DNA of 32,000 nt from Wallemia ichthyophaga EXF-994 (lineage: Eukaryota; Fungi; Basidiomycota), in contig NW_008806291.1 in the NCBI RefSeq assembly GCF_000400465.1, forward strand, positions 135,680 through 167,679, read 5' to 3'. Below, piece by piece: positions 2,408-25,424 of this stretch. The translations under genes were made by a program, and so were the position numbers. Position 1 is the stretch's first letter. Every line of letters starts with the position of its first letter. Below the pieces are notes generated by a model that was not told the DNA's origin, did not search any database, and worked only from the letters and a program-made list of their open reading frames with translations.

Positions 2408-2467
2408 TTCTAAACATTGACCAAATGTATTTGCCGTTTATTCTCATACATAAAAATTTGTTAAAAT

Positions 2468-2990
2468 TTAAATGCTTGATGGGTAAAGCATCTGTAAGGA
2501 AATAAACCGTGAATATAATTCTCAATGCAAATAAACGACAACCCACAATACGACAGGTTGCACCAAATGTAACTGGTGGAAGGTTCGAGGAGAATTTTGC
2601 ACGAACGACGCCAGAGTTACCGTGGGTACGAGTGCAGCGACCCCAAATGACGCGGACCTTGGTTCCATTAACTGCCTTCTTACCCTTGTAAACGTATGCG
2701 ATTCTCTGTGAGCTTTGTGAGCTAGCCATCCACACCACTCAAATCACAACGAAACCCACCTTACCAAGGTAGAATTTAGCATCTTCAGTCTTGGTTGCAC
2801 CCTCAACTTGGATGATAGAGGTCTTTGGGCGTGACGTACGCTTTCCTCTTTGGTGCGAGAGTACACGACCACGGGCGTAGAGGCTGAGTCGAGCGATTAG
2901 ATTGATTGTAAAGCCACGTCCAAAAACACTAACCGAGTCACTGTATTAGATATTAGCTTTTCCTTATATTCTACTCTACTCGCACTCACT
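2468..2990 (-). CDS. RPL35A: 60S ribosomal protein eL33 (L35a/L33), multi-exon
   Basis: Spliced translation [71 protein letters not shown]. Confidence 0.95.
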
Positions 2991-3122
2991 TGCTAAATTA
3001 GTTGGTCAAGGCTAAAGAGAAGAAATTTGACATGATATCAATCCCAAATTTTTAACTTTAAATTTTATTCTTATTTCTTCATCCTTGTATAGTACAATAC
3101 ATATTTACTTGTTTTATTCCCT

Positions 3123-5064
3123 TTATCCTCCCCCTCTGCGCTTCACCGGTGAATGAGACATCCTAGCCTTGGAAACTTGCTCTGCCTGCGAAGGTCTCTT
3201 ATTCGCATTACTACCCCTAACTCCTCTCTTTGTTGGCGTTCCTTTTCCTCCCTTGTTGCTGTCCTTCAGCTTTGCCATCTTCACCCTCTCTGCAGCCCTC
3301 TGCTGTGCCTCTGCTGCTTGATTTGGCGGGTTTGTTGAGTTTTTAGGGTTTGATGGACTTGTAGTATTTGCTGTGTTTGCATTGTTTGAATTGTTTACAG
3401 TGTTTCTACTGCTTTTACTCCCATCATTCCTATCACCTTTACCTCTAGCACCCGCAAACGAAAATGGCGTTGGCTTTGTCGCTGCTGATGTTCTTGGGGT
3501 TGGCGGTGCTTGCTCCACCTTCTTAAGTTTCTTCACCATTCTCGTCTTCCCTGTACCTTCTTCGCCACCTCCAGAGCTACTCGATGCCTTTGCATTAGTT
3601 GTACTGCTACCACTTCCACCGAATATCTTCTTGCCTACACTTTTGATCATCCCAGCAGCCTTGCTAGCAGTTGCGACTCTAGTTGGTGGTTTCCCGCCTC
3701 CGCTCATCCTAGCAGATGGTCTTCCTCTAGCATTAGCTGCCATACTTGACCGTCTCTTCTGTCTCGACACCTCTAATCTACGCTTGACATCATCTCTACG
3801 CTCCTTCTCCTCATTTGTAGGTGCAGCCACTTTGATCCTCTTGTTAGGTTGGCTTGGTTCTGTTACAGATGGTCTAGCTTTGGCTTCTTTCTGCAGAACA
3901 CCCTCGTCTTGAGCAGATGAGGTGGGTTGAGTAGGTTGTGTCGTTTGTCTATATTGTGCAGCCTTCGATGGACTTGTCTTGCCCTCAGTCTGTGCCCTCG
4001 GCTGACCTGGCTTCTTGGGCGAAACCTTGGGTCTGGCTGCATAGTGATCGGCTATACTGCCCATCTTCTTAAACTCATTCTCATGTGCATCATCGAATTT
4101 CCTCTTTATCTTGAGATTCGTGGCACTCTTCAACCCTAATTGCGCTGCACTCTTTGGTGATCTACTCGTCTCTGCTTGCGCTTCAACTTCAGGCTTGACT
4201 TCGGCAGTTGGCAGACGTCTGTTCAGTTCATCCATAATCGACGTGAAACCTGCATTTGAAACACCTGATTGCTGCCCAAACACGAATTGTGGTAGTGGTG
4301 GGTACACCTTAGGTGATGCGCTTCTACTTGAGACATCGCTCTTGTTGTTTCCAGGCAGACTTGGTCTGTTTACGAACGAAGGTGATGGCGATGGCGGTCT
4401 ATTGTCATTGTTGACTAGTTTAACGGTATCGTCAATAATTGTGTCATCATGTATCGATGCAGCTGTTGATAAACGAGTTGGTTGACATTCTCCAGGAATG
4501 ACATTCCAATTCTCTTCTTCCTGCTCATCCTCATCCTCGCTGCTGCTATCTTGATCCATTGGAACGCAAACATCCTGAAACTTGGATGGACTGACGGTGG
4601 ATTGCTTCGAAGGGCTAATATCCCTCCACTTGTTCTTAATAGTTGAAGCCAAGGACCTCAAAGTTGAGCTTGATTTTGAGTGTGTAGGCTGTGATCCGTG
4701 TTCTCCTGCTTGTTTACGCGGTGAAGCTGGTCCAAAGTCGACATTCTCAGAATGGCTAACATCGTCAACCATTTCCCAATTGTCTGTCATTCTACCTTTC
4801 TTCGTTGGTGACTCCTCAGGCGCACCTGCAAAGTCATCGAGTTCCTGTCTACTGATATTCCCGGCCAAGTTTTCTAATCTACCAATAAGCTCTGTATTCT
4901 GAGATAAAAACGCGTAAACTTGCTGGCTTATAATCACAAAACGATACACGCACCTTTCCTTTAGCGGTGAGACCAAATCTTTTACACAGTCTATTCAATT
5001 GTGGGCGCTTTAACGCATGCAGGGCTGCGCTATTTGATAATATCTCCTTTGAAGGTTCCGACAT
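3123..5064 (-). CDS. SAP-domain, low-complexity basic protein with a NuSAP-like motif (putative microtubule/chromatin-associated protein)
   Basis: N-terminal SAP-like exon MSEPSKEILSNSAALHALKRPQLNRLCKRFGLTAKGK, then an intron. Internal RKFDDAHENEFKKMGSIADHY resembles the NuSAP conserved block. Confidence 0.6.
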
Positions 5065-5111
5065 GTCGTTGTTCAGGTCAAACCAAGGTAAACGCGGGTG
5101 TTTGTGATAAA

Positions 5112-6161
5112 ATGAGAGTAATTGCCGTGAAACTGAGTGAATGGAATCCAAGTGACGACGTGAGTGAATTTGTTTAGTGGGGTATAACACACAGCTCACT
5201 CCACCCTTCAAGCTATTCAATAAACTCCTTTCAACCCTAGACACAGCCTCAATTGAACGTACTAAAGCATACAGATTTAAGGATGACGCGAAGAGTACGC
5301 GTTTTAAGCTATATTAAACCAATTCACACTTACAAAAGTACCAGGATGTATTATTGGAAGACTGCTGCCACGATACATACTCACGAAATACTTCAACATT
5401 GATTGGAACTTAATTTCATTCGGTGCAACTCCAGAGAATAGACCTTTCTATGTGAGAAACCGTTTATTATTATCATTTCAATTCTCACTCACTTCAGTCT
5501 AATCCTGTCGACATTCCAGTCTCAGATTACAACGTATCCCATGACGGAGACTATGTTTTAATCGGTTATACGCTATCCCATAACTCCAGAATAGGCGTCG
5601 ATGTTACAAGGCTAGCTTTACCTCGCAATACAACGCACGAAGAGTTCTACCAAGCATTTGAGACACAGGTGTGTACTTTGCCTTAATGGAATTAAACAGT
5701 TTTAAGCTTTTCTGCAGATGCACTCCAGTGAAAGCATCAATCTACGCGCTATGCCAGACCACACATCGAAACTCAGCAGATTGCTATCTTTATGGACACT
5801 TAAAGAGGCTTATACGAAAGCCTTAGGTTTTGGATTAGGGTTTGATTTCAGCCGCGTGGCTTATAGATTCCCTTGCGATTATACTGCAGACTCAACGACC
5901 CCCACAACGCCCGAACAACGTCAACAGAACGCTGCTGCTAACATCACAGCAGTCACAGTAGATGGACGGGATTTAAAACTCGGTTATGTTACTCAAGGGG
6001 TTTTAAATAGATGGGGCTTTTTTCAGGCTCACTTGGATGGCCATCTTGTTGCTGTTTCGCTCAGAGATGGTTCTGAAGGACAGTATCAGCAGCAGGAATG
6101 GCTTAGCACGATACACGTAGATGATCTAGTGAATGATGTACTATCTATAAAGAACAAGTGA
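5112..6161 (+). CDS. LYS5: 4'-phosphopantetheinyl transferase (Sfp/Lys5/AASDHPPT type), multi-exon
   Basis: Spliced MRVIAVKLSEWNPSDD..AYRFKDDAKRCIIGRLLPRY..YNVSHDGDYV..IGVDV..LWTLKEAYTKALGFGL. Confidence 0.85.
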
Positions 6162-6179
6162 ATAATTATATCATACTGC

Positions 6180-7534
6180 CTACTCCCATTGAACATACGT
6201 CAACTCTTCAACCCACTGTTCGCGAGCTTCTTTTTGAGTATCTTTATTAGCCGGATCTAAGCAGCAATCATTCTCGCAGACAAAGAGAAGTATAGTGCCC
6301 CACTCCATATCTGCTGATTTATTATCTTGCAACTCCTCCTTCTGTTTGTCGTCAGTTTCAGTGGAAGTGTTGCACAAGTTAATAATATTAGGCGTGACCT
6401 GACACTCAAATACACGCTTGCTACCGCACTGTGCACATCTTGGCACTTTAGACGCGTCGTAGCTGTTTCCACTACCGTATAGCTTCTTGTAAACTTCATC
6501 TCTGTTGGTGTACATCATCGGCACACCGCCCAGATCATATCTTATGCACTGCTGTGGTTCATGGCTGATGCGTTTGACGAAATGCTCAAAAGCCTGATCC
6601 ATTCCATTACCCATACTCCTCTCAAACTCTTCCAGCTCGCTATTTGGACCAGCTGAGAGGGTTTGATTCACCTCTTCAATCTTCAAAGGCTTTTCAGAGC
6701 TCTGCTTTGGTATGACTTCGGGTGTGGTTGCGATGTACTGACTTGTGTAGCTCGGTTGCGTTGGCCACGATAACTTCGTTGGCGCTGCACCTCCATCTGA
6801 AATCTCCAACTTGGCTAGCTCAGCTTCTAGCTCTTCATCTTCATCTTCTCCTTCCTCCTCGCTATCTGAATCTATTATCTTCTTGAATCTAGGCTGTTCC
6901 TCTTCATCGTGGTCAGAGTCGGAGCTGTCTGCACCAAAAGCACCACCTCCCTGACTACTCTGATTGAATGGGTTGGGTTTATGTGACTGTGTCTAGTTAG
7001 CAGGCTTTATCGTACCCAAGTACCCAAACACACAGTAAATGGATTGCTCTTTGCTTCTTCCTTAGCCTTGTTTTCATCCTCTACCTGCTTCTTCTTCTTT
7101 TCTTGATCCCTCTGCTTCAATTTCTCGAGCTTCCTCGCCCACTTTTCATTCCTAGACAAACACCTAAACGCTCTGACACTGCCCTCCTTCTTCTGGCACG
7201 CGACTCTAGAGCATGCGAAGAAGAACAATACTCTATCATTGACAGAATCAGGATATGGCGCAAATATCTGTATCATCATCTGCATACTCCCATTGCAATT
7301 TTTACATAAATTGCTTGAGGGGTTAGGGAGAGAGCGTAAACGCGGGAAGGACTGAGATGTAAATAAGAATATATCAAGGTTACAAAAGAGAGTGCGTACA
7401 GGTTGACCTCCGATGCGCGATATTTCAATGACTGGATGATCTGAATCGGCGATCGGACCGCCATCAGGCAAGCCCAGGTGAACATTGCTCTCGTATTCAC
7501 TGTAGTCTGAATCGTCTGAATCGTATGAGCTCAT
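6180..7534 (-). CDS. TSR4: PDCD2-like protein / uS5 chaperone Tsr4
   Basis: N-terminal VHLG..SRIGGQP..C..C..MIQIFAP; C-terminal PDCD2_C IRYDLGG..C..CGSKRVFECQVTP..MEWGTILLFVC. Confidence 0.8.
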
Positions 7535-7865
7535 TATGCTTATGGTTTTACTGAAGAAATGTCAGAAAAGAAGAGAAAGAAAGAGCGTAAGAGAAAAGAG
7601 AGAGTGCTAGATCAGGGCCAAAAGTATCATCAACCCGATAATCCATCCAGTACGATCCACATTGGCTTCCGAATAACTCAGAGAACCGCCGCGGAGAGTG
7701 TACCTTGAAGAAAACCAGTAAGACTCGTCATCTAAAAGTAAAATATATTTCATCCTCTAGCACTACTCTATTCCTTTACGCCTCCCGCCTCATTTTACTC
7801 ACTTTATTTCGTTGCGGATCAAGAAGCTTTTCCCATTTCTGCTTTTCAAAATCCCCAAATCAAAA

Positions 7866-8881
7866 ATGAGCAGCGGAAATCCCGATGAGCAAATCTGGCA
7901 GAGACTGAGCGTGGATGCGCTAGCGATTCTAGCCAGCTCAGAGCTGATCACCAAGGAATTAAATGAGGCTGTGCTGGAAGAGAAGACTATAGAATACAAT
8001 AGCGATGTCAGATACACCATTGGTGGCAAGTTCTTATCCGATCACTTGGAAGCCTTCAATAGCCAGAATAAGTGCGTTTTGTGTGTCTTGCTCTTTGTTT
8101 CGCTTCTTACCCGCGAATTACAGCGCTCGCAATCTCATCAGCCACAATCACCAGCACGTCATTGAACCCGATTATAACACACCATTCAATAGCTACGAAG
8201 ATGCTCTAGATAGGCTACTCCCTTATCACGTATATCAACAGCCAGTTGAAGACACTCACGTCTCCCGACCTTCCACAAGCCTAGGTGATGATACCGTCCT
8301 CGATTTTTACGCACGGCGGCAGAAGATCTACGACAGATTCAGAAAAGCGAGAGAATTTGATGTTATACACAAGTCTCACTCAAATTTCCTCCTCAGACAA
8401 GTCAATAGTCACATAAAAGACGATAACGTCAGATTGGCACAACAAATACGTGATTTAAAGGGTGTTCCTGGTGTTTCTACCACGAACAGATCAGCAACAT
8501 CCACTCCTGCCCCTTCTACTCCCGCAAACAATGCTCAGATTCCACTCACTCTCCCTTATACCAGACTCGGTCAGCTCATGTCACTAGGTATCACTCCTGT
8601 ACCGATTGCAAATGTACAAAATGGTGATAGCCCCGCATGTGTATTGCACAGCGTAATTGAGAACAGGGGCATGGTTCATTTGGTCGTTAACTTTGGCAGT
8701 CTCAATCCGAGACAACTTAACACTTTAGCGCAGCTATTGCGAACTTGTGAGTGTTATTCTCAACAACAAGTTTTTTTGTTTACAATAATTACTAGGGGTA
8801 TCTGAGAATGATCGGAATGCAGGAAATATTGGCGAAAATAACTCCAGAAACACAAACAATGATACCACGTCAAATGACTGA
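7866..8881 (+). CDS. GLTSCR1-domain protein (chromatin remodeller-associated), multi-exon
   Basis: PDYNTPFNSYEDALDRLLPYHVY matches the GLTSCR1 domain signature. Last exon inferred after a gtgagt..tag intron, ending at TGA 8879-8881. Confidence 0.65.
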
Positions 8882-9046
8882 TATGTGACTGATATACGAC
8901 TCAAACACAACCTCCTTAGACAAATTTAGCATTCACTCACTCGCATCCTTTGTTTCATGTTGTATAATTTATTGACAAGCGTGTTTTGTTTCTGACTGAC
9001 AGATATAAGTACAACACATGCAAAGCTAATTGAACTTGTGAAAATA

Positions 9047-9909
9047 TCATGTGGGTGGCTTGAAGAAACCTCTGATATCTTTACTTGCCTTTTCAGGCTT
9101 GTGCTTCTTGTTAGGTGGTGTTTTAGCTGCCGTTGGTGGTGGTGCCGGTGGACCTGGAGCTTTTCCTATCCTTTCCAATAAATCTTCGAGCGCGGCTTTA
9201 GGCAAGTCGTCACTTGTAGAGTTATAGTGTTTGAACACGCCATCTGTTTCGTCCACCACTAGAGCGTTCTGTATCGGTTCCAGATTGCAAACTGGCTGCT
9301 TTCTGTTGCCGAACATATTCAATATCTGTTGAATTTTAGAATGAGCGTCATTTCAAAAAGTACACCCACTTTTATAGCTTCGACGGGGTCTGCTATAGTT
9401 GGATGGTCTTGTCGTGTCGTGAGACGATCCTTGCAGACCTGATTGGATGTGAATGGTATGTTGGAACTGAGCAGGAACTCACTTGGTAAGATACCTCAAC
9501 TAGCCATATCGATAAGCTATCACACTGAATGTTATCTTCACTTACGACTCAAAGACTGAGTGACAGCGCCAAACTCAGCAGCGATTCTTGTCCAGTGTGA
9601 GCGTTGTCTGGAAGAGAGAAATAGCATTGAGAAATAACATAAAAACACTACTGAACCACCCACTTGATATCAATGTTTGTTCGGTCAACAATGACATTCA
9701 AACCAGTGGACAAAGTCTGCCTTACTAGCTTCTCTACACTCCGTCTGTCCTTCAAATCATCCTGATTGGCTCTAACCCAATTTGGGATGTGTCGTTCGAT
9801 AGCCTTAGACAGAGTGCTCTGAGAGGATATGAGAACGGAAATGCGAATAATCCTTACGGCAGACCTTCCCAGAGCCAACTACGCCAACCAAAATTAACAC
9901 GACCGTCAT
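9047..9909 (-). CDS. P-loop (AAA_33 / polynucleotide kinase-like) protein, multi-exon
   Basis: Spliced MTVVLILVGVVGSGK|STLSKAIERHIPNWVRANQDDLKDRR..VIVDRTNID (Walker A, DRTN motif). Confidence 0.75.
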
Positions 9910-9942
9910 TCCCGTTCGTTGTCTCTGCTCAACACTCTAGCA

Positions 9943-10545
9943 ATGGCAACTAAGAAGCAATTGGAAAATATGTTCACAACCAACGTCAAGCAGATGAATT
10001 GGAAATCAATGCAAAAGTCCAAATCACCAGAAATGCTCTTCGTCGGCAGATCAAACGTCGGGAAATCCAGTCTTCTCAATAGTCTTCTCTCAACCAAAGA
10101 CATGGTAAAGACGAGCAGACACGCAGGTCAAACAAAGCACTTAAATTACTTTTCACTTAATGGAAAATTCACCCTCGTGGATGCACCAGGATATGGCGGT
10201 ATGGGTAGAGATAGTTGGGGTGGAATAGTGGAAGAATACATTGAAACGCGTTCGAATCTGAATCGTGTTGTGGTTCTAATCAATGCTATGCATGGTTTAC
10301 TAGACAGTGATCACTATTTCCTAAACTATCTAAACAAACAAAGAGAAGAATATGGCGTACGTTGGTTATATCAATTGGCGTTTACAAAATCAGATATGGT
10401 TCCTAAGCCCGTTTTAGAGGAGTATGTTGGAAATGTGGAGATGGAGTTATGCAGACGATATCCAACACTGACACCACCAATACACATGGTATCAATTAAG
10501 GATCCCTTATCAATATTCAAGTTGAGACGGGGTCTGCTTGAGTAG
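9943..10545 (+). CDS. EngB/YihA-family GTPase (Mrx8/GTPBP8-like)
   Basis: G1 GRSNVGKSS, G2 GQTK, G3 DAPGYG, G4 TKSD. Confidence 0.85.
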   Translation: MATKKQLENMFTTNVKQMNWKSMQKSKSPEMLFVGRSNVGKSSLLNSLLSTKDMVKTSRHAGQTKHLNYFSLNGKFTLVDAPGYGGMGRDSWGGIVEEYIETRSNLNRVVVLINAMHGLLDSDHYFLNYLNKQREEYGVRWLYQLAFTKSDMVPKPVLEEYVGNVEMELCRRYPTLTPPIHMVSIKDPLSIFKLRRGLLE

Positions 10546-10549
10546 GAGG

Positions 10550-11839
10550 CTAAGTTAGATAGTCTAATACATGCACATAACCTTGACTAGTACAGAAGAC
10601 GACTTTACCATTCGCGTCGTCGAAATCAGCGTTAATGATAACACCCATATGTTGAGCATCTGTCGTTGGGAATACAATGTTGAAGTTGTTGTCGATAACA
10701 GTACACTTTGGGAAGTAACCACCTGTAATGATAGAGAAGAAGTATTTTGTATCGCTAACGTCTATGAATTGACCCATCGTCATCACCGTGTAGTCTGTGT
10801 TAAAGTGTTGCAATAATGGAGAAGGTGATTGTAGCGGGTAGTGATGTGTGATTGGGTTGTAGATATTGCTAGAGTTGAAAGTTGTTTTATGCAACTCATG
10901 TCTAGTCATGCATATTAAGTGGGTATCTTGACTTTGATCGTTACGCTGAATTGAGTTTGTAAACTTGCAAAGAAAGTTAAATTCATTTGGAGTTGATTGA
11001 TTGAATGTGAGTGATGGTATAATGCGTTGCTGGGTTGTATAGATTGTTGAAGATTGTCTGCTTTCCAAACAATGATCAGATTCGCGAAATGTGTTTACAG
11101 TGTATGTTGAATGTGTTGTGTTGTTACTGATTGACCATAAGTTAGATGATAGAATGTCTGATAAGTCATAAACTTCTATTCTCGAGTATTTAGTGATGAC
11201 TATTAAGTGATTATTGAGTAATTTCAATTGAGATAAAGTGTGATCTGAAGAGGAATCTCTCTGGAGTGTAAGGTGTTGATTTGTTCTGTGATTTAGAACG
11301 TGTAAGGTGTGATTAAAGGATGAGTAGACAATAAAGTCTTCTTCTATAGATATAGAGTGGCATATTGGCCAAGATCTATCATAGACGGTAGATAACAAAT
11401 CAATCCGATGTGGTTTATCAATGCTAACCCTATAAACGCAACTTGCGGGTTGATTATTGAAGAAATAGGCGACGATTAGGATATAATCATTACGCTTATC
11501 AACAGCTAAGCAAGTCAAGTCATCATTACACTTGATAGAAGCTTGATTGTTTATATTGATTAAGCTGTCAGATGAGCAAGTTATAACCAAATTATCAACC
11601 AAATGAACAAATTTAATGAAATACTTATCAAATTTGGTAGAAGTCAGTTTAAATCTTTGAGAATTCCACCTCTTATCAATCCTAATGGAATCCAAAGGCT
11701 TAGCTGTGTTTAGCCTTATAGAGAGCGCATGCGAGACTAAAGAATAGAAATCTTTATTGATTTCTAATAAAGCCAGTAGATTTGAAGTGTCTAGTCTATT
11801 AATAATTTCCAACCAAATATCCTCATTCAATAAGATCAT
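10550..11839 (-). CDS. F-box protein with a divergent beta-propeller-like C-terminus
   Basis: N-terminal LNEDIWLEIINRLDTSNLLALLEINKDFY is F-box-like; beta-rich downstream region; 429-aa uninterrupted ORF. Confidence 0.6.
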   Translation of the reverse strand: MILLNEDIWLEIINRLDTSNLLALLEINKDFYSLVSHALSIRLNTAKPLDSIRIDKRWNSQRFKLTSTKFDKYFIKFVHLVDNLVITCSSDSLININNQASIKCNDDLTCLAVDKRNDYILIVAYFFNNQPASCVYRVSIDKPHRIDLLSTVYDRSWPICHSISIEEDFIVYSSFNHTLHVLNHRTNQHLTLQRDSSSDHTLSQLKLLNNHLIVITKYSRIEVYDLSDILSSNLWSISNNTTHSTYTVNTFRESDHCLESRQSSTIYTTQQRIIPSLTFNQSTPNEFNFLCKFTNSIQRNDQSQDTHLICMTRHELHKTTFNSSNIYNPITHHYPLQSPSPLLQHFNTDYTVMTMGQFIDVSDTKYFFSIITGGYFPKCTVIDNNFNIVFPTTDAQHMGVIINADFDDANGKVVFCTSQGYVHVLDYLT

Positions 11840-11872
11840 TATTATGGTTCAACTGACGACGTCAAACGATAA

Positions 11873-13786
11873 ATGCCTGTGAATCAGGTGCGCTTTAGTT
11901 TTTAAACCTGAATTCTATTAACTTTAAACTAAAGCAAGAGCTCTCAATTTTAGAATCCTTAGTCAAGTTAGTTTGTGTGTGAGTGTGTGGCCACTTGCTA
12001 ACTTCCGTTATAGCATCCGAAACCGCCTGACAGCTTTAAAGAAGGATAGGAAGGATTACATCAAATCTTCAGATGTACAATCAATTTACTCTCAAGTTAT
12101 AAAGCTAATTTCAAAGTTAAATGATGCAAGAGAAGACGTTGATCTATCAACAGCTACTCCAAATAGAGTTGATACTACGCTAGATGACGTTATTCAATTA
12201 TTATCTTTATTCTTCTTAACGATTGGTAAAAACAAAGAAAGTCCTGCAACTTACTGTCAATTAGCAACTATACGTCAATTACTGTCTCATCTCGATGAGT
12301 CTGGTGTCTACACACAAAATGACTTACAACCATTTCAAAATAGACTTAGCCAACTTAGCCAGATTATCAATAAAGATAGAGAAATCGGTAAACACCCAGA
12401 TCAAATGACAAAATTTCTTTTGAGAAGGCTAGAAGACTGTGAACGCATTTACAGAAACTTGGTCACCTCTTTAAGCGTTTTAGACGTTGAGCTAGTTCCC
12501 ATCCATCAACGTTTAGTCACAATTCGTCGTCAATTAGCTGCTATCGTTAGCAAAGACAACCCTCCTCAGAAGCACGAAATTAAACCTCTGCTCGAAGAAT
12601 TACGTAAAATTGACAGCAAAAGACAAGATGGTAAATTCTTAGGCCCAGGTGGCTCATCCGTCCCACCCGGTCAAGCCATTCTTGTCGGTTTACTCGAAGA
12701 ATGCTTCGAAATCGTTCAAGATGTTAACGCTAGAAGAGATGACGTCGCTATACCACTTAAACCTATATTTGACAGACTGACGGAAATCAGAATGCAATTA
12801 GAAAGGTTGGTCCTAACTCACAGATGGACTTTGCGAGAGACCGACCTTTGGAATTATCAATTAAGCTTGCAAGAGATTGACAAAATGAGAATAGATGGAA
12901 AATGGGTTGACAGTGATGGCAATCGTGAGTTCTAGCTACTTGGTTACCATGACATCGTACTAACAATCGTCAACAGAACCAGGTGGTCAATTCGTTCGTT
13001 TTGCTTTAATAGTCCAAAATATTACCCTAATAATTACCTCAGGCCCTTCTCTACCTTCTCCGCCGCTGTCATGGTCTGCTGTACAGACTGATCTCTTCAA
13101 GTGAACCTATCTCCGAAGAACTCATGCCTATATCCAACAAGCTACTCACTGTCAAGAAGTGTTTAAATGAAGTTCTCAAGCATGGCAATGACTTTACTCC
13201 AAGAGATCTTTATCCAGTGAGTACCTGCCCACTTGCTCAATATCCACCTAAATGCCTCTAGTATCACCTCGCACTCTACCAAATCGACAACCTCCGTAAA
13301 GATGGCAAATTCTACTCTGACGACGGAAGTGTTCCAGAAGGTGCGTACTAGGATAGCATACCTCATCCCATGCTCATACTTCAACACACAGGTCAAGCGA
13401 TAGTCTCTGCCCATCTAGAAGAATGTCATGCTTTGATTGAGCAAATGCAAGAAGGCATAAACTCATCTGATGACGATGAAGACGATGAAGAGGAGGATGA
13501 CGACAACTCTGAAGAAATCTTAGAAGATGGATTAAAACCTGCACAACCTTTCCCAACTCACTCACCCGTCCCTCCATCTGTCACACTCGCTCCGCCTACT
13601 TCCACACTCGCAAGTCTCGCAATAAGAAGCAACGATAGCGGCTCAACCGCAAGCAATGCCTCATCATCAGCCGTACCGCCTGTGAACATTCCAAGTGGTA
13701 CAACCCACACTACTTCAATGGATAGATCTGAGTCTACCTCTACTTCACTCGACACTGCAACTGCATCTCAACCAGATCAGCAGTGA
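11873..13786 (+). CDS. Conserved fungal protein, DUF2408/UPF0662 (YPL260W-like), multi-exon
   Basis: Spliced start MPVNQ|QELSILESLVN|IRNRLTALKKDRKDYIKSSDV; repeated HQRLVTIRR / LTHRWTLRETDL blocks; family assignment from recall. Confidence 0.65.
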
Positions 13787-14314
13787 GTTTTATTGTCTTG
13801 ATTACAAACGATGCATTATTATTATATCTGTTATCCAAGGCTATCTGCTAAAGTGTAGCCACCCAACGAGCTCTCTCACCCACTAAAAGCCTGCATTATA
13901 TAAAAATCGTAGTCAAGGGGAATATTTGGACAATAATGATGTGATTTGCAGAAACTAGGTGTGCAAAAAGGCGATGGTGATTGTAGTCTGTTTAGCACTT
14001 TGAATCACTCTGTATCACTCTGTAAACTTTAAACTATATCTGGCATGTTTTAGGGAGTGTGAATTTGTTTTTATAATTACACATTTGATTATCCTGACTT
14101 TGGCAATGTCATTGCAACTTTCATCACCCCTTCACTCCATTTATTTGAAATCTCGAAATGCACTGGTCAGAAGCCAAACCCCATGTTTCATAGTTGGGCT
14201 GACCCCCCCACTTTTCTTTGCGTCATTTGTATTTAGTAGGTATGCAATAGTTCGGAATGACAGTTTTTTTTCCTGGAGCCAGCATTAAGCCCTGTGGACG
14301 CTAATTGTCTGTGA

Positions 14315-14668
14315 ACTGCCTCGTCTTGGTGGTTGAGGTTAGATAAACCAAGTGATGATAGGAAGCTTACTAGGAGTATCACTCAAAGGGAACTTTAAAC
14401 AGACTGCCAGGTATTGTTGAAGGTCAGTGAGAGTCGAAAGAGTAATGATAGAGCTTACTGGGAGTTGTGCAGACTATTTACAGTGAAAGGCTTATACCCG
14501 CCTTACTATAGCCACCAAGACGTTTTACCGCAAGGAAAAGAGGAAGGGATTGTGGGCTGCTTAAATACTGCAGCGACGGACGAGAAGCACTTGACTCGCG
14601 CCTTGTGTTTGTTTTGTCTCACGAATCCCGGCTTCCCTCGTTCCTATTTACGCCGCTAACGGCGTACA
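14315..14668 (+). repeat. Copy 1 of a 354-bp structured non-coding repeat (candidate non-autonomous mobile element or ncRNA)
   Basis: Reverse complement of 18199-18552 with 3 substitutions (at 14381, 14406, 14412); many hairpins. Strand chosen from G.U pairs and GNRA loops. Confidence 0.95.
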
Positions 14669-15128
14669 AACAGTTATTCAATGGCTGTGACTGGTGATAT
14701 CAGCGAAAATCACGTAGCTCGATACTACGTTTATGGTGAATATAGAGGTATATCGGTGTGATTCAGCAGCTTTGAAGATTTAGATGTTGGTATTATGCAA
14801 ATTTCCGACCATTTGCGGTTTGAGTTGAGCAGATCAATTTGATAGGGAGATGAATAAGATCGAGAGCAGTGTAGATATTCAGTAGGACACTCAAGCCACC
14901 CTTACTTGGTTATTTGCAGGGTGCCTTGAGAAAAATTAATCGAATCAAATGACTCATACGGCTGCAATCATTTGATCGTACTAGGAGAGCAATTCAAAGC
15001 GCCCTTTCATCTATAAACACATCCTGAAGTCATCAGATATGCAGAGACCAGCCCCAGATTGAGCTTTCGTATAGTTTGACGAAAAAATGGCTTCATTAAT
15101 ATATCTATAAAGTTAAACTACAAGTATT

Positions 15129-16605
15129 TTAATACAAGGGGAAATTACTGTTTATTTCGCTATACCTTGCCAGTCCACCTTGAACATTCTTAACATTGAG
15201 TTGATTTTTTTTGAGGAGGGCATCAGTGGCTATCTGCGAGTCGTTTCCACGGCGACAAAAAACATAAGCAGTGTCGTTCTTGTTCACTTGGACCTGTGAA
15301 GGATCTTTGAGTAGGTCGGTTATAGGTAAATCTTTGGCAAGTTGTGAGATCATACATCTGCAGATAAAATATCACTCACTAATTGATCCATCGATGTGAC
15401 ATATGCCGTATTCAACAGCAGATCGTGTATCGAGTACGAGGTCATTATTCTTGCGTGACGCCATGAAATCCTATTCAAGATGAGCTTTGCGATGCCTATA
15501 TAGTTTCAAATCCAACGCACCTCTACGCTTATCTCATTGTTTTTGCTGAGATTCATGTCTACACCACATGAACCAGCGCCGGTGAAGGTGAGATAATCAA
15601 TATCCTCGACATTCTCCAAACGCTCTTCATCATCATCGCCGTTAGCAAAACAATTCTTCTTTCTGCCTCTCATCTTCATTGTTCTGAAAGGAGCAGGAGC
15701 GAGCGCTGAGTAAATTGTCATTGCACTTTCACCGCTGTGCATGCCAAGAAGAACTTTGATACATTCAGTAGCCTGTAATGTACCGAGCGTACCAGTAACG
15801 ACACCTAGAATACCATCATCAGCACAGCTAGTTACAGTTTGTACTGGTGGTGGTCGCGGAATGATACATCTGTAACATGGAGCATCGTCACTGTAACAGA
15901 GAGTAATGATTTGACCGTTGAAGCCAGTTGCAGCGGCACTGATGAGTGTTGCACGTTTGTTAGATCTATTGTGTATGACTACACTATCGGAGACGAGATA
16001 ACGAGTTGAAGGGTTATCAGTACAGTCTAAGACAACATCTGGCTGGATGGAGTGAAGGAGAGATTGGGCATTGGTTGAGTTAAAGGATTCTAAGACTGGG
16101 ACTACTTTTACATTTGGGTTGATGTAACCTGCAGCTTGATTGATAGATTGTGCCTTATGCATACCAATCTTCACGTCAGAATGCAGAATCTGGCGTTGGA
16201 GGTTGCTGATTTCGACAGTATCACCATCTATAACAGTAATAGTCCCTTTTATTGATTAGATTTGATATTGTAGAAGCGAAGCGAGAAGACACACCGACGC
16301 CGGTAGCAACGAGATACTGGGCAGCGGGACATCCAAGACCACCAGCACCAACGATGACGACAGAAGCATTCTTGAGTTTCAATTGGCCTGTGAGATAGAG
16401 TGAGCGAGTGAGGAATAAGTAGGGCTGCAAACTGACCAGGTAAGCCGATGCCATCAAGTACCATATGGCGGCCGTATCTCTTGTATTCATCGAGCGATAA
16501 GCCATTGACATCATTATTTGGAGATTTATCTTCTCGCTGTAATTTAAGCTCAAGCTCCCGCAAATGCTGGCGAACATGTGTGATCTGCTCGTTTATAGAG
16601 GACAT
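15129..16605 (-). CDS. UBA4: Adenylyltransferase/sulfurtransferase Uba4/MOCS3 (ThiF plus rhodanese), multi-exon
   Basis: [21 protein letters not shown]; [14 protein letters not shown]; PCYRC; SCADDGILG; rhodanese CRRGNDSQ. Confidence 0.92.
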
Positions 16606-16712
16606 GAAGGTGAGAGAGTAAGAAGGAATTGGAAATAATTTTATTTGTTTGGAATGTTTGGTGCTATGTAGCTGCTATCGTATCCAGCCAGCGTACGGTC
16701 AAGAAGAAAGAT

Positions 16713-17769
16713 ATGGCCGGTGTTAGCGATATAATTTCGAATATACTTGGGTGGTCATACGTGACTTGCTGGTGTATTTCATTTTATCCGCAACTGGTTT
16801 TAAATTATAAACGCAAACGGTGAGCAATGGAGGCTTATCAAGAATCGTAGAGTTGATGCGTGATTAGAGTGGATGGCGTGAGCATAGATTTCTTATATCT
16901 TGTGAGGAGGATGCAAGTATGGCGCTTTAAACTAAACCTCGAGTAGAACGTACTTGGATTTCTTTGCTTGACAATCTACAATCTGTCATTCCTATACTCT
17001 GAAACAATAAAAAGGGAGTATAGAAGCAGGCACAATGGAAACGACTCGACTGTACAGTTCAATGACGCGTTATTCTCAGTTCACGCTTTAGTAATGTGCA
17101 TCATTGGCGTTATTCAATCCGTTATCTATCCGAGAAGTAAATCACAGAAGAGCGTGAGTTTAACTTCAGGGACGACGATTTGGATAGTGATTGAAGGATT
17201 TTTCATAATCTCGCTATTTGTCTATCTCGGATGGTGGGGACTAGAATTGATTGATATGATGTACGCCATCTCTGCGGTGAAAATCTTCTTGACATGGCTC
17301 AAGTATGCACCACAAGTAAGTATTAGGATTATTTTAACCAAACTGACAAGTCGAAGATGCTACACAATTATCGAAGAAAGTCCACAGTCGGATTTTCAAT
17401 ACTGAATATACTATTTGTGAGTCTAGGGAGTATTATAAATGGGAGAATATAACTGAAGGAGAATGACAAAGGATTTTGCAGGAGGATTGCTTAGTTTATC
17501 ACAATTGATATTTGACTCAGTTGTGTCTGAAGATTTAAGTGGAATAACGGGAAACCCAGTCAAGTTGTAAGTGATGATGTTTAGTGAATGATAGCACTTA
17601 CGAATAATTAAACAGAGCGTTATCAGTTGTAACGCTTGGCTTTGACTTTGGGTTCATTGTTCAGCACTATTACTTATATAGAGGGAATGAAGGGAGTGAG
17701 GATGATGATGATGATGACGCAACACGATTTAATCAATCAAGAGATGAAGAGAGTCGAGGATTCTTGTAA
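16713..17769 (+). CDS. ERS1: Cystinosin/Ers1 PQ-loop vacuolar cystine transporter, multi-exon
   Basis: [24 protein letters not shown]|SVDG..; second PQ loop KYAPQ|[15 protein letters not shown]; last exon [13 protein letters not shown], stop TAA 17767-17769. Confidence 0.88.
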
Positions 17770-17807
17770 CTAAGAGAATCAATACCCTTTGTGATGTAAC
17801 CACCGAA

Positions 17808-18119
17808 ATGGCTGATAAGAAAAAGGCCGATTCGAATGAGATCAGAGGTGAAATGAGCGAATCAACGCCACTTTTAGAAGATGATAGACATGTTAAATTC
17901 AATACTAGAATAAGGATAAACAGGAATACGACGGCATCAACTACGAGCTCAGTTTCAGCGTCGCTGAGATCAAATTCAAGCAATCAACGCTACTCAAACT
18001 CATTCATGAGCATAACGCCTTTACCTGACCCATATGATAATAGTCCATCGAGTAGTGAATACATTTGGGATAGCATCGTTGAGTTTTTTTGCGGAAATTG
18101 TTGTCAAAGTTTGAATTAG
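17808..18119 (+). CDS. Small orphan ORF (103 aa), possibly a vacuolar/membrane-anchored protein
   Basis: ATG-initiated ORF with an ESTPLL dileucine-like motif and a C-terminal FFCGNCC Cys cluster; no family recognised. Confidence 0.35.
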   Translation: MADKKKADSNEIRGEMSESTPLLEDDRHVKFNTRIRINRNTTASTTSSVSASLRSNSSNQRYSNSFMSITPLPDPYDNSPSSSEYIWDSIVEFFCGNCCQSLN

Positions 18120-18198
18120 TTGAATAACTAGGGGTTATAGAGATCTCTAAGGATCATTTATATTCTTCTTCATAGATAACAGAAATCTAATGACTGTG

Positions 18199-18552
18199 TG
18201 TACGCCGTTAGCGGCGTAAATAGGAACGAGGGAAGCCGGGATTCGTGAGACAAAACAAACACAAGGCGCGAGTCAAGTGCTTCTCGTCCGTCGCTGCAGT
18301 ATTTAAGCAGCCCACAATCCCTTCCTCTTTTCCTTGCGGTAAAACGTCTTGGTGGCTATAGTAAGGCGGGTATAAGCCTTTCACTGTAAATAGTCTGCAC
18401 AACTCCCAGTAAGCTCTATCATTACTCTTTCGACTCTCACTGACCTTCAACAATGCCTGGAAGTCTGTTTAAAGTTCCCTTTGAGCGATACTCCTAGTAA
18501 GCTTCCTATCATCACTTGGTTTATCTAACCTCAACCACCAAGACGAGGCAGT
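18199..18552 (-). repeat. Copy 2 of the 354-bp structured non-coding repeat, inverted relative to copy 1
   Basis: 351/354 identity to 14315-14668 by manual alignment; its edge lies 6 nt before the WDR70 ATG. Confidence 0.95.
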
Positions 18553-18558
18553 CCGCAA

Positions 18559-20685
18559 ATGGATGATGAAATGGCCCGATTGATGGGATTTAGTGGATTC
18601 GGTAAGAAGGATAAAGAGCAGAAGTCAGCGATTAATCAAAGATTACAATATTCTAAAAGGGTTTGTCTGTTTCTTGATTTATTGAAGTGCACTAATATTC
18701 GCGTTACAAGGATGATAATGAACCTATAATAAAAAACACTGATGAAAATGATCAGCAACCTCCTCAACAGCCTTCTCAATCACAGTATAATTCTCTTGCC
18801 CCTCCCGCTGATGATGAACATAAGCCTGACATTGTAAACTTGGAAAAGACTCAAAAGACTCAAAAGACTCAACCTCAGCAACCCATAAAGCCCCCAGAAC
18901 CCTCTCAAGATGAAGAATACGAAGCTGATCGTGATGAAATCCCTTGTTCGCATGAAATCATCCTTCAGGATCATACAAAGGTTAGTTTTTACTCGCATTT
19001 ACAACAGTCATATAAATACAAATTACAGGCTGCGACTGCTCTCGATCTAGATCCATCCGGTAGTCGTCTTGTCACCGGTTCTCATGATTACGATATCAAA
19101 TTATGGGATTTCGCAGCAATGAATAGTACTTTGAGACCTTTCAAGTCTTTTGAAGGGTGTGAGACTAATCATGTAAGCTGCTTGTTCAATCACCCAAGGC
19201 ATTCTAACATGACTTCAAGATACATGACCTCAAGTATAGTATAAATGGTGACTCAATCCTTGCAGCATCTGGGCAAGCTATCGTGAGACTATTTACCCGT
19301 GACGGTGATGAGATATACAAATGGTCAAAGGGCGATCAATACATTAAAGATCAACGTCAGACAAAGTTAGTGTTTTGCATTACTTGGCTATCGGAAGCTA
19401 ACAAAAGCTAATACCGCACTCAGAGGACACATTGCTGAAATCAACAACTGCGCTTGGCATCCATTCGATTATAACATCTTCATCACTTGCTCTGCAGATA
19501 GCACAGTACGGTATGTCTTAATGAAAAAACAAAGAGTACTCTCCTTACAAATGCTCAAATACTCAGAATCTGGGACGTTACAGAACCTCGTGAACAGAAA
19601 CATGTCCTTGTGTTTAAATCTAAAGAAAGAGGTACGAAAACAAAGGTGACTGCTTGCGCGTATAGTCCAGATGCCAAGTACATAGTAGCAGGTGTGTTTA
19701 ATTGCAAACAAAAGTATACAACTTAGCGTGTACAGTTGGTCTAGACGGTGCTATGCATCTTTGGTCAACGGCCGGGAACTACGCTCGACCTAACGCAACG
19801 AACGACGCTGCGCACAACAAAAACACCTGGACTAGCTCTGTAGGATTCACACACGACTCCAAGTATATCATCACTCGAGGCGGTGATGACACAGTGAAAT
19901 GTAGGTAGAAAACCACGTAACGATAAATGGAAACTAATCAAAGCAAACCAGTGTGGGATGTGAAAAACATCAAGCGACCATTAAGTGTAGCTAGCAATCT
20001 TCCTTCCCTTTATCAAGAGGTGAATGCTGCTATATCACCTGATGGCAAGTACATAATGACCGGTGTGGCTGGAGAGCGAGGAGCAACCAAGGCCTCAGTC
20101 GTAGTTTTATCACGAAGCGACCTCTCAGAAGTACGTCGTATACCAGTCGGCAAAGACAGAGGAGGGTGCGTGATAAGAACGCTATGGCACTCGCGCATCA
20201 ATCAAATAATAGCAACACATTCAAATGGCAGCGCATACGTCCTTTACGACCCAATGACATCTGTCCGAGGTGCCCTAATGCCTTTGGGGAGAGCACCAAA
20301 GCGTGCGCGTGATGTAGAAGAGGTCCTCGCAAGCACTGACCCAGATCGCGATTTAAGAGTACCGATCATTACGCCAGATGCCATGGAAGAGGATGAGCGG
20401 ACCAAGAAGCGTATGCGCGCCAAGAAGGAGTCTGATGCTCGTAAACCACAGCCACCGCTGGTGGGCGCAGGCAGAGGAGGCAGAGTGGGGAGTAGTGCGA
20501 CACAAGCAACTGTCCAGAGACTGTTTGGTGAGAGTACATTGGGACAGGATCCACGTGAGGAGCTTCTCAAGTATGCCCATGTCGATAAGGACCCGACGTG
20601 GACAGCTGCTTGGAAGGATACAGGGAAGGTATATGATGACAAGACAGAGGAGGTAGACAAGGACAAGAAGAAAGAGAAGGAGTAG
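18559..20685 (+). CDS. WDR70: WD40 protein WDR70/GAD-1-like, multi-exon
   Basis: Start MDDEMARLMGFSGFGKK; LDPSGSRLVTGSHDYDIKLWDFAAM; C-terminal GAGRGGRVG..DPREELLKYA. Confidence 0.85.
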
Positions 20686-21333: not shown

Positions 21334-22119
21334 ATGGCTGTTGGAAAGAATAAGTCGTTCTCCAAGAGAGGTGCCGGTAACAAGCGCCGCGCCGTTGACG
21401 CTTTCGCTAAGAAGGATTGGTACGACTTGAAGGCACCTTCACTCTTCGAGACCCGCAACATCGGTAAGACAGTCGTCAACCGTTCAGCTGGTCTTAAGAA
21501 CGCCGACGACAGTCTTAAGGGACGTATCGTTGAGCTTTCACTTGGTGACCTCAACAAGGATGAGGACCAAGCATTCCGTAAGATGAAGCTCAAGGTTGAC
21601 TCTATCCAAGGCAAGAACTGCTTGACCTCATTCTACGGTATGGATATGACTTCAGACAAGTTACGTTCCTTGGTTCGTAAGTGGCAATCATTGATCGAGG
21701 CACACGTCGATGTCCGTACAACCGACGGCTACTTGGTCAGATTATTCGCTATTGCTTTCACCAAGCGTCGCCCACAACAAGTCAAGAAGACAACATACGC
21801 CAAGTCATCCCAAATCAAGGAGATCCGTAAGAAGATGTTCGATATCATGACTAGAGAGGCCGGCTCTTGTGACTTGAAGCAATTGGTTCAAAAGTTCGTC
21901 CCAGAGGCCATCGGTCGTGAGATTGAGAAGTCAACAAGAAACATCTACCCATTGCAAAATGTTTTCATCAGAAAGGCAAAGATCTTGAAAGCACCAAAGT
22001 TCGAATTGGGCAAGTTATTGGAACAACACGGTGGTGCACAAGCCGCAACTGAAGACTCTGGTGTCAAGGTTTCAAAGGGTACCGACTACGTTGAGCCAGC
22101 ACCACTTGCATCAGTTTAA
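21334..22119 (+). CDS. RPS1: 40S ribosomal protein eS1 (S1/S3a); coding region intronless
   Basis: [55 protein letters not shown]. Confidence 0.98.
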
Positions 22120-22389
22120 AATTAGTTTTAGGCTTGTTATGAGAATGCTATATGAGCTTATATAAAACCATTTGTCCGTCTTGTGCTGTGCATAAAATAT
22201 ACAGCGACGTCATTGAGAATTTGATCGACATAAGCTATAAATGTCGGCAAGAGAAGGAGGGAGTGGGGATAGTGATAGGAATGTGTATTGATAATGATTC
22301 TATAAAGAAATAAAATAAAAAAATGATTTGCGTTTAGTTTCATAAACCTTTGATTCAAGTCTCGGTTGGATTCTTGGATACTCACCGCG

Positions 22390-23890
22390 ATGAGCGAGAA
22401 TGTGGAAAGGAACTGGATGAGAATATTTAAGAGGACACAGACAAACCTGGATGATAGTCAAGGGGAATCGACAAAGTCCAAGTTGATACGTCGCGTGGCG
22501 TCTGCGCCAAACACAAACAAGTTGTTCAAGAAGAGCAGCAGCAATCTACTCAGCCCGTTAGAGAAGAACAACATCTACGATTCAAATCACAATACATCCG
22601 AGAATACCATTTCCTCCACTTCAACCTCCACCAAATATCAAACATTGGATCATACATCGATTGAGAAGGCTGACAAGTTTGATAAGGTTGTGACCAAAAG
22701 CCCCTCCAAACCCCCGTTTAAACGAACTTACAGCTCCAACTCAATCAAGACTAGAGTGGTATGTCCTTCCCCCTTTGGTATATTCACATTCCTTATCCGT
22801 ACCTACACAGGCTCAAGTCACACCCGCGTCATTTGAAAAGATTAAATTACTCGGCAAAGGTGACGTTGGAAAGGTTTTCTTGGTCCGCGAAAAGTCGTCT
22901 GGCTCTTTGTTCGCTATGAAAGTTCTTAACAAGCGGGAAATGGTGAAGCGTAATAAGATCAAGAGAGCTTTAGCAGAGCAAGAAATCTTATCAACCTCCA
23001 ATCATCCCTTTATCGTCACTTTACATCATTCTTTTCAATCTGCCTCGTATTTGTACTTCTGTATGGAGTACTGCATTGGTGGTGAGTTCTTTAGAGCATT
23101 GCAAACAAGGCCAGGCAGGTGTCTATCAGAAAATGATGCCAAGTTTTACGCTGCAGAGGTCATAGCAGCGCTGGAATATTTACACTTGATGGGCTACGTT
23201 TATAGAGATCTTAAGCCTGAAAATATTCTCCTCCACTCCTCAGGTCACCTCATGCTCAGCGATTTTGATCTCTCGAAGCAAGGCAAGACAACCGGTGGTG
23301 GTGCTCCAACGATGAAGCACGGTCAAAATGGTTTACCTATTTTAGACACGAGGAGCTGTGTCGCTGATTTCCGCACCAACTCGTTCGTTGGTACTGAGGA
23401 GTACATTGCACCTGAAGTTATACGCGGACATGGTCATACTTCGGCCGTTGATTGGTGGACACTCGGTATACTCATCTATGAGATGATATTCGCAACTACA
23501 CCATTCAAAGGCTCAAATCGGAATATGACATTTTCAAACGTCTTGAAGCAAGATGTAGATTTCCCTGACTCGTACCATAACATGTGCTCTTCATCTGGAC
23601 GCTCACTCATACGCAAATTACTCATCAAGGATGAGAACAAGCGTTTAGGATCTACATCTGGTGCAAGTGAAGTCAAGCAACACAAATGGTTCAACACTCT
23701 CAATTGGGGATTATTGCGTAACTTGAAACCACCAATTATTCCACGTAACGGGAATGAAACAGATGCTGTAAATTTCCGTCACTTACGTGAATCGAGGTCG
23801 ATTGATTTCGATAATCAAACAATTCAATCAAAGAATGATACCATTGATCCATTCCGGTTTTTCGCTAGCGTAACAAGACTTACAGATTAA
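22390..23890 (+). CDS. FPK1: AGC Ser/Thr kinase, Nrc-2/Kin82/Fpk1 (flippase kinase) family; one intron at ~22760-22809
   Basis: RRVASAPN motif; [15 protein letters not shown]; YRDLKPEN; DFDLS; [14 protein letters not shown]. Confidence 0.88.
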
Positions 23891-23990
23891 GTTTATTAGT
23901 TTCGGATAGATTATTACTATATCTCATTAGATTTATATTGTAGACACTGTAAATTATTCATGTCTCTATGGCTTCTTGATTGATGGTGTC

Positions 23991-25424
23991 ATGGCGTCAT
24001 TGAGGGATTTGCCAACAGAGCTACTGCTAAAGATTATTGATTGGTTGGATTTGAAGGATGTTGTACACTTAAGTGGAGTGAATAGGCTATTATACAGTGT
24101 AGCGATATCGAACACAGTGTGGTATTCAATCAATCAGCGAACACTCCCAGAAGTAGATATCGACAGCTGGATGATGAAGCTAGGATTGAGTGATCGTGAC
24201 TTGTACACGAATGTGACGAGATATGCCAAGTCATTTACCTATGTCCATGCTGGAAATGTGTATCCTCAGGGCCATTTACTTGACTGGACGATATCCGCAA
24301 CTGAGCCAATATCCCAAGGGAAGCTGGTGAGCATTACCAACACTTTTACGCCCACGCCCGCATATACCAGTGCACTCGAGCAAGCGCGATGGATATATGT
24401 GAACGACGCCAACATACTACTCAACGATGTTATCAGCGATTATGTAGAAGCAGGACTGCGCATAACGGAGGAAAGAGTGAGCGATATAGCAGTCAAGTTC
24501 ACCGGATCGCCAAGTTGGCCAGTTATCGCGGTAGATGTGGAGAGTGGGGCGGAGAAGCGCATGGAGGGATACAGAAGCGAGGATGTACCGATACGCCATC
24601 TGCTCTGTCCTAAACATGAAGATGAAGACCATGTCGAGGAGACTTACTTGCAGACCCACCCCTTTCACCACCTCACCCCGTTCCTCGCACAGAGACGCGG
24701 CATTGTTTCGGTTTTCCACTTCAATCGCCCTTACCCTTGGCCAGAAGACGAGCCTCTGGAAACTGTCCAGCTTGTTCAGCCTGGCGATGGCGCGCCAACA
24801 GATAGCGATAGCGATATAGTGGGTTACTATGCAGGCACATATGGCGGACATGGCATCGAAGTGCTTGGCATGCGCCGCTTCAATAGCGCAGATGGGTGGG
24901 CGTGAATTCTCAGTCAGCGCGATTCTCACTCTAACTTTATCGCAGAAGACCCCTGCTGGAATTCGTCAAGGTGACTGGAGACGACAATGTGCCGAGGTGG
25001 GTTTGCATTGCTGGGCAGCTATGTTATAGACAGCTACTGATGCGCTGTGCGTTGCACTGGCAGAGGACTAGTGTCTTTGCGCGTCTTCCTTGATGAAGAG
25101 GTTCGCGATACGGAGCTCGTCAGCGACCAACACGAAAGCAGACTGTCCTCAGACGATAACCTCCCGTGGCCGATAGACAGCCCTACACGACCGGCAGGCG
25201 TGTCGTTCGCAGGGGTTGGGAAAATAGCACACAGCGTGAGTTGCATTCTTGGTCTCGTTTCTCATTCACAGTGCTCATACTCACACGCATCCTCTTGCTG
25301 CTTCTTTCAGTCATACACATCCCCCAGCTGGACTAACGTGGTCGTGCACATCGAGAAGGAGAATCTGGTGTACGCGCGTTGGACAGACTTGCGCAATACG
25401 CTTATAATGAAAAGGTTCTTGTGA
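23991..25424 (+). CDS. F-box protein with an FBXO31/DUF3506-like C-terminal domain, multi-exon
   Basis: LRDLPTELLLKIIDWL F-box; GYYAGTYGGHGIEVL and spliced EFVKVTGDDNVPR motifs. Confidence 0.7.

Follow-up and report, generated by a model that had tools for sequence, protein, structure and literature searches.

The closest described counterparts of the locus reported here are the inverted low-copy repeats that undergo concerted evolution and flank inversions in the human and yeast genomes. In a stretch of 32,000 nucleotides (nt) from Wallemia ichthyophaga EXF-994 (source scaffold KE007241.1), which we call the window and in whose coordinates all positions are given, we analyzed a 354-bp non-coding element that is present as two inverted arms, copy A and copy B, around a 3.5-kb spacer with a UBA4 gene, a PQ-loop gene and a small conserved gene. 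The two arms resemble the human and yeast repeats in being inverted, non-coding and a few kilobases apart, and likewise in their lineage specificity, in polymorphisms shared between arms through conversion and in their position at a synteny breakpoint. They differ from them in being very small (354 bp), in residing in a 9.6-Mb repeat-poor genome and in that the inversion of the spacer is here predicted and not observed.

Three further kinds of system invite comparison. The mating-type switching loci of Ogataea polymorpha and Komagataella and the yeast 2-micron plasmid also possess inverted arms around a segment which can be flipped by homologous recombination. The Wallemia cassette, however, contains no mating-type or regulatory genes and no dedicated recombinase, and unlike in such flip-flop systems the 3′ ends of its genes adjoin the arms from inside, so that a flip should switch nothing. 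Templated insertion and template switching, as in synthesis-dependent strand annealing (SDSA) or in microhomology-mediated break-induced replication and fork stalling and template switching (MMBIR/FoSTeS), are alike in that a junction or break receives a short inverted copy of sequence from nearby, with no target-site duplication and with microhomology or homeology at the edge; in contrast to those processes, the mechanism in Wallemia is read only from the anatomy of the arms. Lastly, miniature inverted-repeat transposable elements (MITEs), non-autonomous Helitrons and solo long terminal repeats (LTRs) share with the element its size, its non-coding nature, its lineage-specific insertion and a hairpin near one end, whereas the Wallemia element is devoid of terminal inverted repeats, of a target-site duplication and of TC...CTRR termini, and two copies of it were detected. 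We know of no autonomous relative of it.

By the tests applied, the element is an inverted low-copy duplication with concerted evolution, and the defining tests for a MITE, a Helitron, a solo LTR, an Rfam family and a staggered-break duplication turned out negative. We therefore favor, with moderate confidence, the explanation that the arms are a low-copy inverted duplication of the W. ichthyophaga lineage, left by break repair or by a rearrangement and evolving in concert, and that they are neither a gene nor a recognizable mobile element.

Two inverted arms and the exchange of sequence between them

A repeat search of the window recovered one large inverted pair, 14310-14688 and 18179-18557 (379 nt, 97%), and no other repeat longer than 37 nt within the 32,000 nt. 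In the MAFFT alignment the core of the element, 14315-14668, matches the reverse complement of 18199-18552 at 351 of its 354 bases, and the three substitutions (14381, 14406 and 14412) all fall in the outer third. The original prediction, which had been made by inspection of the window, described a near-perfect inverted repeat of 354 bp with 3 substitutions, and both repeat search and alignment bear this out; its further statement that the element is duplicated and non-coding is likewise supported. The outer edge of the element is sharp while the inner edge is fuzzy, as 14 of the 20 adjoining bases match and the similarity drops to chance level beyond about 30 bases. The arms and their extensions are as follows.

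14315-14668, no strand: copy A (left arm), high-identity core, from repeat search and MAFFT; its outer edge at 14315 is set by Logan contigs of k = 31
14669-14688, no strand: degenerate inner extension of copy A, 14/20 identical to the reverse complement of 18179-18198
18179-18198, no strand: degenerate inner extension of copy B, from the alignment
18199-18552, no strand: copy B (right arm), reverse complement of copy A, stopping 6 nt short of the ATG of the WD40 gene

The EXF-994 genome is a SOAPdenovo assembly of short reads at K=21 (PMC3849046), and for the genomes of other W. ichthyophaga strains IDBA-Hybrid was used, with k up to 120 (PMC6738226). Seventeen contigs of ~149 kb from these other strains bear the DUF2408 gene, which lies to the left of copy A, and all 11 of those listed end within copy A. 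Likewise, the 19.8-kb contigs with the WD40 gene and eS1 start within copy B (3 contigs listed, common to 7 samples). The strain contigs end exactly 119 nt (k-1) past the last base which distinguishes copy A from copy B: a stop at 14433 corresponds to arms identical from the edge inward, a stop at 14531 to a last difference at 14412 and a stop at 14570 to a last difference at 14451, the exception to this rule being one strain contig that ends at 14409. In three further sequencing runs the Logan contigs (k = 31) stop at 14344, that is 14314+30, or 30 nt into the arm. Both unique flanks are attached to the same, outer, end of the element, which requires at least two copies and excludes an assembly artifact, and both arms in inverted orientation were found in every strain seen. 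The extension of contigs to k-1 past the last difference also speaks against a third identical copy in the strain genomes, diverged copies being compatible with the same pattern. The count of two copies covers about 45 kb of W. ichthyophaga DNA, and a 28-mer of the element gave no match in the JGI metagenomes.

Six sites of the element vary among strains (14362, 14381, 14406, 14412, 14417 and 14451). Since all of them other than 14451 lie at most 119 nt from a unique flank, their assignment to an arm is direct. The block 14381/14406/14412 reads either AGT or GTC, and each form is found in either arm according to the strain.

EXF-994: copy A AGT, copy B GTC
SPNX: copy A AGT, copy B GTC
SPOB: copy A GTC, copy B GTC
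SPOH: copy A AGT, copy B AGT, the arms differing instead at 14417 and 14451

GTC was also found in copy A of SPOE and SPOQ, and the number of differences between the arms within one strain is 0, 2, 3 or 4. As the same variants segregate in two paralogous places, the arms exchange sequence by non-allelic gene conversion, i.e. they evolve in concert, and this holds them at ~99% identity whatever their age. It follows that the 99% identity cannot date the duplication. The original prediction had regarded the element as recently mobilized; the near-identity of the arms is accounted for by gene conversion, and the degenerate inner extension of 20 nt points to an older event, its edge having escaped conversion.

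Insertion at copy B and synteny breakpoint at copy A

An exact look-up of the eS1 ribosomal protein ORF assigned the window to scaffold KE007241.1 of EXF-994, where the ranges of the annotated loci put it at about 135,680-167,679. W. ichthyophaga is a halophilic basidiomycete whose 9.6-Mb genome has introns of ~60 nt (mean 61 nt) and 1.67% repeats (PMC3849046). The window, which had earlier been read as tightly packed and prokaryote-like, is actually a piece of a fungal chromosome with short introns, and because of this a bacterial-style list of open reading frames (ORFs) is misleading here. The features next to the arms and between them are listed below.

11873-13786, plus strand: DUF2408 gene, left of copy A
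13825-14314, no strand: orphan non-coding DNA from the DUF2408 gene to copy A; collinearity with a close relative ends at 13824
14669-15128, no strand: orphan non-coding DNA from copy A to the UBA4 3′ end, from similarity searches against the loci of relatives
15129-16605, minus strand: UBA4/MOCS3-type adenylyltransferase-sulfurtransferase gene (ThiF and rhodanese, 4 introns), within the spacer
~16629-17770 (approximate ends), plus strand: PQ-loop (cystinosin/ERS1-like) gene, PF04193, with a W. mellicola orthologue, within the spacer
17808-18119, plus strand: small conserved protein gene, 103 aa, C-terminal CGNCC motif, the last spacer gene
18559-20685, plus strand: WD40-repeat gene, which we take to be WDR70-like; the 590-aa model in other strains begins at 18559
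21334-22119, plus strand: eS1 ribosomal protein gene, intronless, right of the WD40 gene

The orthologous loci in relatives were reached via members of protein clusters. In W. mellicola CBS 633.66 the gene order is GST(-), UBA4(-), PQ-loop(+), small gene(+, 207 aa), WD40(+) and eS1(+). In the sister species W. hederae, UBA4, the WD40 gene and the genes following it are on one unbroken contig, the PQ-loop and small genes were found by similarity, and the gene order is the same as in W. ichthyophaga. That the spacer genes have the same orientation relative to the WD40 gene in these relatives implies that this orientation is ancestral and that the segment has not been inverted. The distance from the stop of the small gene to the ATG of the WD40 gene is just 23 nt in W. 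hederae (SPNW01000107.1, 3810-3876) and 124 nt in W. mellicola; the W. ichthyophaga spacer is made up of 79 + 354 + 6 nt. As judged from these short, element-free spacers, copy B is a lineage-specific insertion placed 6 nt ahead of the ATG of the WD40 gene.

The surroundings of copy A are of a different kind. The DUF2408 gene is followed by Tim44, RPS4 and Nramp in W. mellicola, and likewise in a relative whose nucleotide identity is 76.6% (Logan SRR25399871). The locus of the latter relative is collinear with window positions 2034-13824, where the similarity ends (position 11790 of the relative's locus). By this comparison, copy A is part of a 1.3-kb stretch of orphan DNA, at a synteny breakpoint which is specific to the lineage and joins the 3′ flank of the DUF2408 gene to the 3′ flank of UBA4. 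Neither the 1.3-kb junction nor the B spacer gave any match in the loci of relatives (tblastx, blastn-short). A BLASTN search of related genomes had been proposed along with the original prediction; across ~160 kb of orthologous DNA from relatives, searched with nhmmer and blastn, there was no match to the element. The region downstream of UBA4 is different in each Wallemia species examined: W. mellicola has GST there, and another Wallemia lineage, seen in several metagenomes, has a 435-aa ORF downstream of UBA4 and the whole block inverted relative to eS1. To go by the gene orders compared, the UBA4-WD40 neighborhood is a rearrangement-prone hot spot in the genus Wallemia.

Some other features of these loci may be recorded. 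In the lineage with the inverted block, SH3-PX and DFP genes separate the WD40 gene from eS1. At the start of the W. hederae contig SPNW01000107.1 (1-250) a long (GCACTT)n microsatellite gives way to degenerate, heptamer-like repeats rich in GCA; this stretch lies ~570-816 nt downstream of UBA4, and the equivalent place in W. ichthyophaga is occupied by orphan DNA and copy A.

Origin of the arms and competing explanations

The anatomy of the arms suggests that one of them was copied from the other, ~3.9 kb away, during the repair of a chromosome break. The copying, probably a templated insertion or a template switch, would have begun on the short homeology that the inner edge still shows, and a microhomology (YCRCA) at the outer edge would mark its end. 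Such copying would explain why there is no target-site duplication and why one edge is sharp and the other fuzzy. Once in place, crossing-over between the two arms should flip the 3.5-kb cassette of UBA4, PQ-loop and small gene, and such a flip would be nearly neutral because only the 3′ ends of genes face the arms. A population study of W. ichthyophaga reports an inversion only at the MAT locus (PMC6738226). Several points weigh against an inverted duplication left by break repair and evolving in concert. A third, diverged copy or a donor elsewhere is still compatible with the ~45 kb of W. ichthyophaga DNA covered; either arm could be the donor; and both the flipped cassette and the start of a transcript in copy B are predicted. 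Moreover, W. ichthyophaga recombines, with linkage disequilibrium decaying over ~1.3 kb, so that allelic recombination in the population adds to the haplotype patterns (PMC6738226), although it shuffles alleles and cannot alone place one variant block in both paralogous arms.

The first competing explanation is that the arms are a non-autonomous transposable element, be it a MITE, Helitron-derived, a solo LTR or unclassified, which made two insertions or a local hop in the W. ichthyophaga lineage, and we consider this unlikely. It would suit the clean lineage-specific insertion of copy B into a short spacer, the location of copy A at a synteny breakpoint, which is a frequent position for repeats, the G+C-rich, Helitron-like hairpin near one end, and ends that can be read as TG...CA if the degenerate extensions are included. 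The internal structures which matter for this explanation, and for that of an RNA gene, are the following.

14322-14332, no strand: internal 11-bp inverted repeat CGTCTTGGTGG, pairing with 14512-14522 and the source of most of the predicted folding
14512-14522, no strand: partner of the internal inverted repeat, CCACCAAGACG
14649-14666, no strand: G+C-rich 7-bp hairpin TACGCCG-CTAA-CGGCGTA at the inner end of the element

The junctions, however, do not have the appearance of transposon termini. There are no terminal inverted repeats, as the ends ACTGCCTCGTC... and ...CGGCGTACA are not complementary and the sole inverted repeat is the internal one of 11 bp. No target-site duplication was present at copy A or copy B for any of the several candidate boundaries inspected; copy B has no direct repeat at its flanks, and the CTGTGA close to copy A belongs to the extension that both copies share. 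With neither terminal inverted repeats nor a target-site duplication the element was rejected as a MITE. It was rejected as a Helitron too, since in spite of the hairpin at 14649-14666 both copies lack the TC start and the CTRR end. As a solo LTR it would need the degenerate edges to have TG...CA ends at all, and its flanks of 5 bp are not alike (ATGAC/AATGG at copy B, ATAAC/GACAA at copy A). An introner reading was also rejected. Nor was a coding remnant found: a Pfam scan of the ORFs of the element and junction gave no match, and for the longest ORF of the element (85 aa) a HMMER search of 1.84 billion representative proteins gave no homologue and one spurious 23-aa match. In addition, the k-1 pattern of contig ends speaks against a further identical copy, the ~160 kb of DNA from relatives lacks the element, and one fuzzy edge is not expected of an element with defined ends.

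These results leave standing the earlier statement that the arms have no common target-site duplication, no long terminal inverted repeat and no transposase ORF, which now rests on junction inspection, Pfam and the protein search. Of the earlier idea of a recently mobilized non-autonomous element, one point is supported, namely that at least copy B was inserted relative to the sister species, so that DNA was copied to a new place. Recent mobilization is not supported, and neither is a non-autonomous element, for which terminal inverted repeats, a target-site duplication, Helitron or LTR termini, a sign of a third identical copy in the assembly graphs and a copy in the ~160 kb from relatives are all wanting.

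A further reading holds either that the arms form a working recombination module, with the cassette in both orientations in populations or cultures and with the arms, one in the leader of the WD40 gene and both close to 3′ ends of the DUF2408 or UBA4 genes or within that leader, giving complementary RNAs that would couple the expression of the WD40, DUF2408 and UBA4 genes, or that they are the first member of a fungal mobile class with neither terminal inverted repeats nor a target-site duplication. We regard this reading as quite improbable.

That the arms are copies of a structured non-coding RNA gene, such as a small nucleolar RNA, a small nuclear RNA, an RNase P/MRP-like RNA or a new RNA, was the other suggestion of the original prediction, and we find it very improbable. 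The element is non-coding and of a fitting length (~350 nt), it has a predicted long-range helix of 11-14 bp together with a terminal hairpin and a fold z-score of -2.5, and it contains RUGAUGA-like motifs. But Rfam 15, searched with 5 kb and with the element alone, returned no match at gathering scores nor anything beyond noise at E<=10, the best score being 11 bits against a threshold of 100 bits; the Rfam check that the original prediction had named thus came back with no family. ARAGORN detected no tRNA, and scans for bacterial promoters and terminators are uninformative for a fungus. The reverse strand folds nearly as well (z = -2.35); the modest z-scores of both strands, around -2.4, are driven by the 11-bp inverted repeat and the terminal hairpin, and such symmetry between strands is expected of a palindrome in DNA and not of an RNA. 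No pairing links any two of the six variable sites, and there was no covariation. Finally, the element is missing from both syntenic sites in the sister species, and an essential RNA gene is not expected to be species-specific.

We assign an equally small likelihood to staggered-break (isochromatid) duplications that would have arisen by inversion of the 3.5-kb segment. Such an event would place inverted arms at both ends of the segment, with no target-site duplication and no features of a transposable element, as is seen here. But the orientation of UBA4(-), PQ-loop(+) and small gene(+) with respect to WD40(+) is the same in W. mellicola and W. hederae, which contradicts a single inversion and would need two successive ones, and the B side is an insertion site and not a breakpoint. 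The chance that the second copy is an assembly artifact, i.e. a repeat collapsed or falsely duplicated in the EXF-994 scaffold, as might be feared of short reads assembled with SOAPdenovo at K=21 (PMC3849046) and as the original prediction had itself considered, is practically nil, because contig ends in independent strain assemblies link each unique flank to the same element end and the arm-specific variants of some strains need two copies.

Consequences for the neighboring genes and for the genome

Returning to an inverted duplication which evolves in concert, one consequence of it would concern the WD40 gene. Given the tiny upstream spacer in relatives, the WD40 gene of W. ichthyophaga must initiate within copy B or read through it. 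On this sequence reasoning, the WD40 gene must have its 5′ leader, and probably its core promoter as well, in the outer part of copy B. A TATAAG is present at 18370-18375, 184 nt ahead of the WD40 ATG. An upstream ORF of 14 codons runs from 18453, only in the GTC haplotype (on the element's outward-reading strand), and it is the T/C polymorphism at 14412 that makes or removes its upstream ATG at 18453-18455. The haplotype of copy B could hence affect translation of the WD40 gene, if the leader begins upstream of this ORF. With the spacing seen in W. hederae, the promoter of its WD40 gene must, as far as the sequence tells, lie inside the upstream gene, or else both genes must be co-transcribed.

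The insertion also bears on the gene models of this region. The small protein of W. ichthyophaga is complete, as its terminus (...CGNCCQSLN, then the stop) matches that of the relatives. The EXF-994 gene model of 687 aa, however, begins at the ATG of the small ORF (17808) and apparently joins the 103-aa protein to the WD40 protein, with copy B removed as an intron of ~450 nt (our estimate) against the genome mean of 61 nt. Other strains have a separate 590-aa protein from 18559, and in W. mellicola the small protein is its own 207-aa gene. The insertion of copy B has probably misled the annotation of EXF-994 into this fusion. The PQ-loop gene (~16629-17770, plus strand) has introns and a PF04193 match with E = 7e-11, and it is syntenic with a 271-aa gene of W. 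mellicola; the EXF-994 record does not list it among the genes. In other strain assemblies eS1, an nrc-2-like kinase and an F-box protein (window 21334-25424) are merged into one model of 1449 aa, owing to which the 90% protein cluster is a mixture of unrelated proteins. Elsewhere in the window, a direct repeat of 37 nt, 73% identical and with the core GACGGGGTCTGCT, occurs at 9367-9403 and 10511-10547, upstream and at the 3′ end of an EngB-like GTPase gene; it may be a shared regulatory motif or a chance resemblance.

On present evidence the locus reveals neither a new RNA nor a new mobile element. What it offers is a small and clean case of inverted paralogous arms evolving in concert within a fungal genome that ranks among the most compact and the poorest in repeats, with the element placed exactly at a lineage-specific synteny breakpoint and directly against a start codon. 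The pair of arms accounts for the breaks of every short-read assembly of the species at both points, and it marks the site of a possible inversion polymorphism in W. ichthyophaga.

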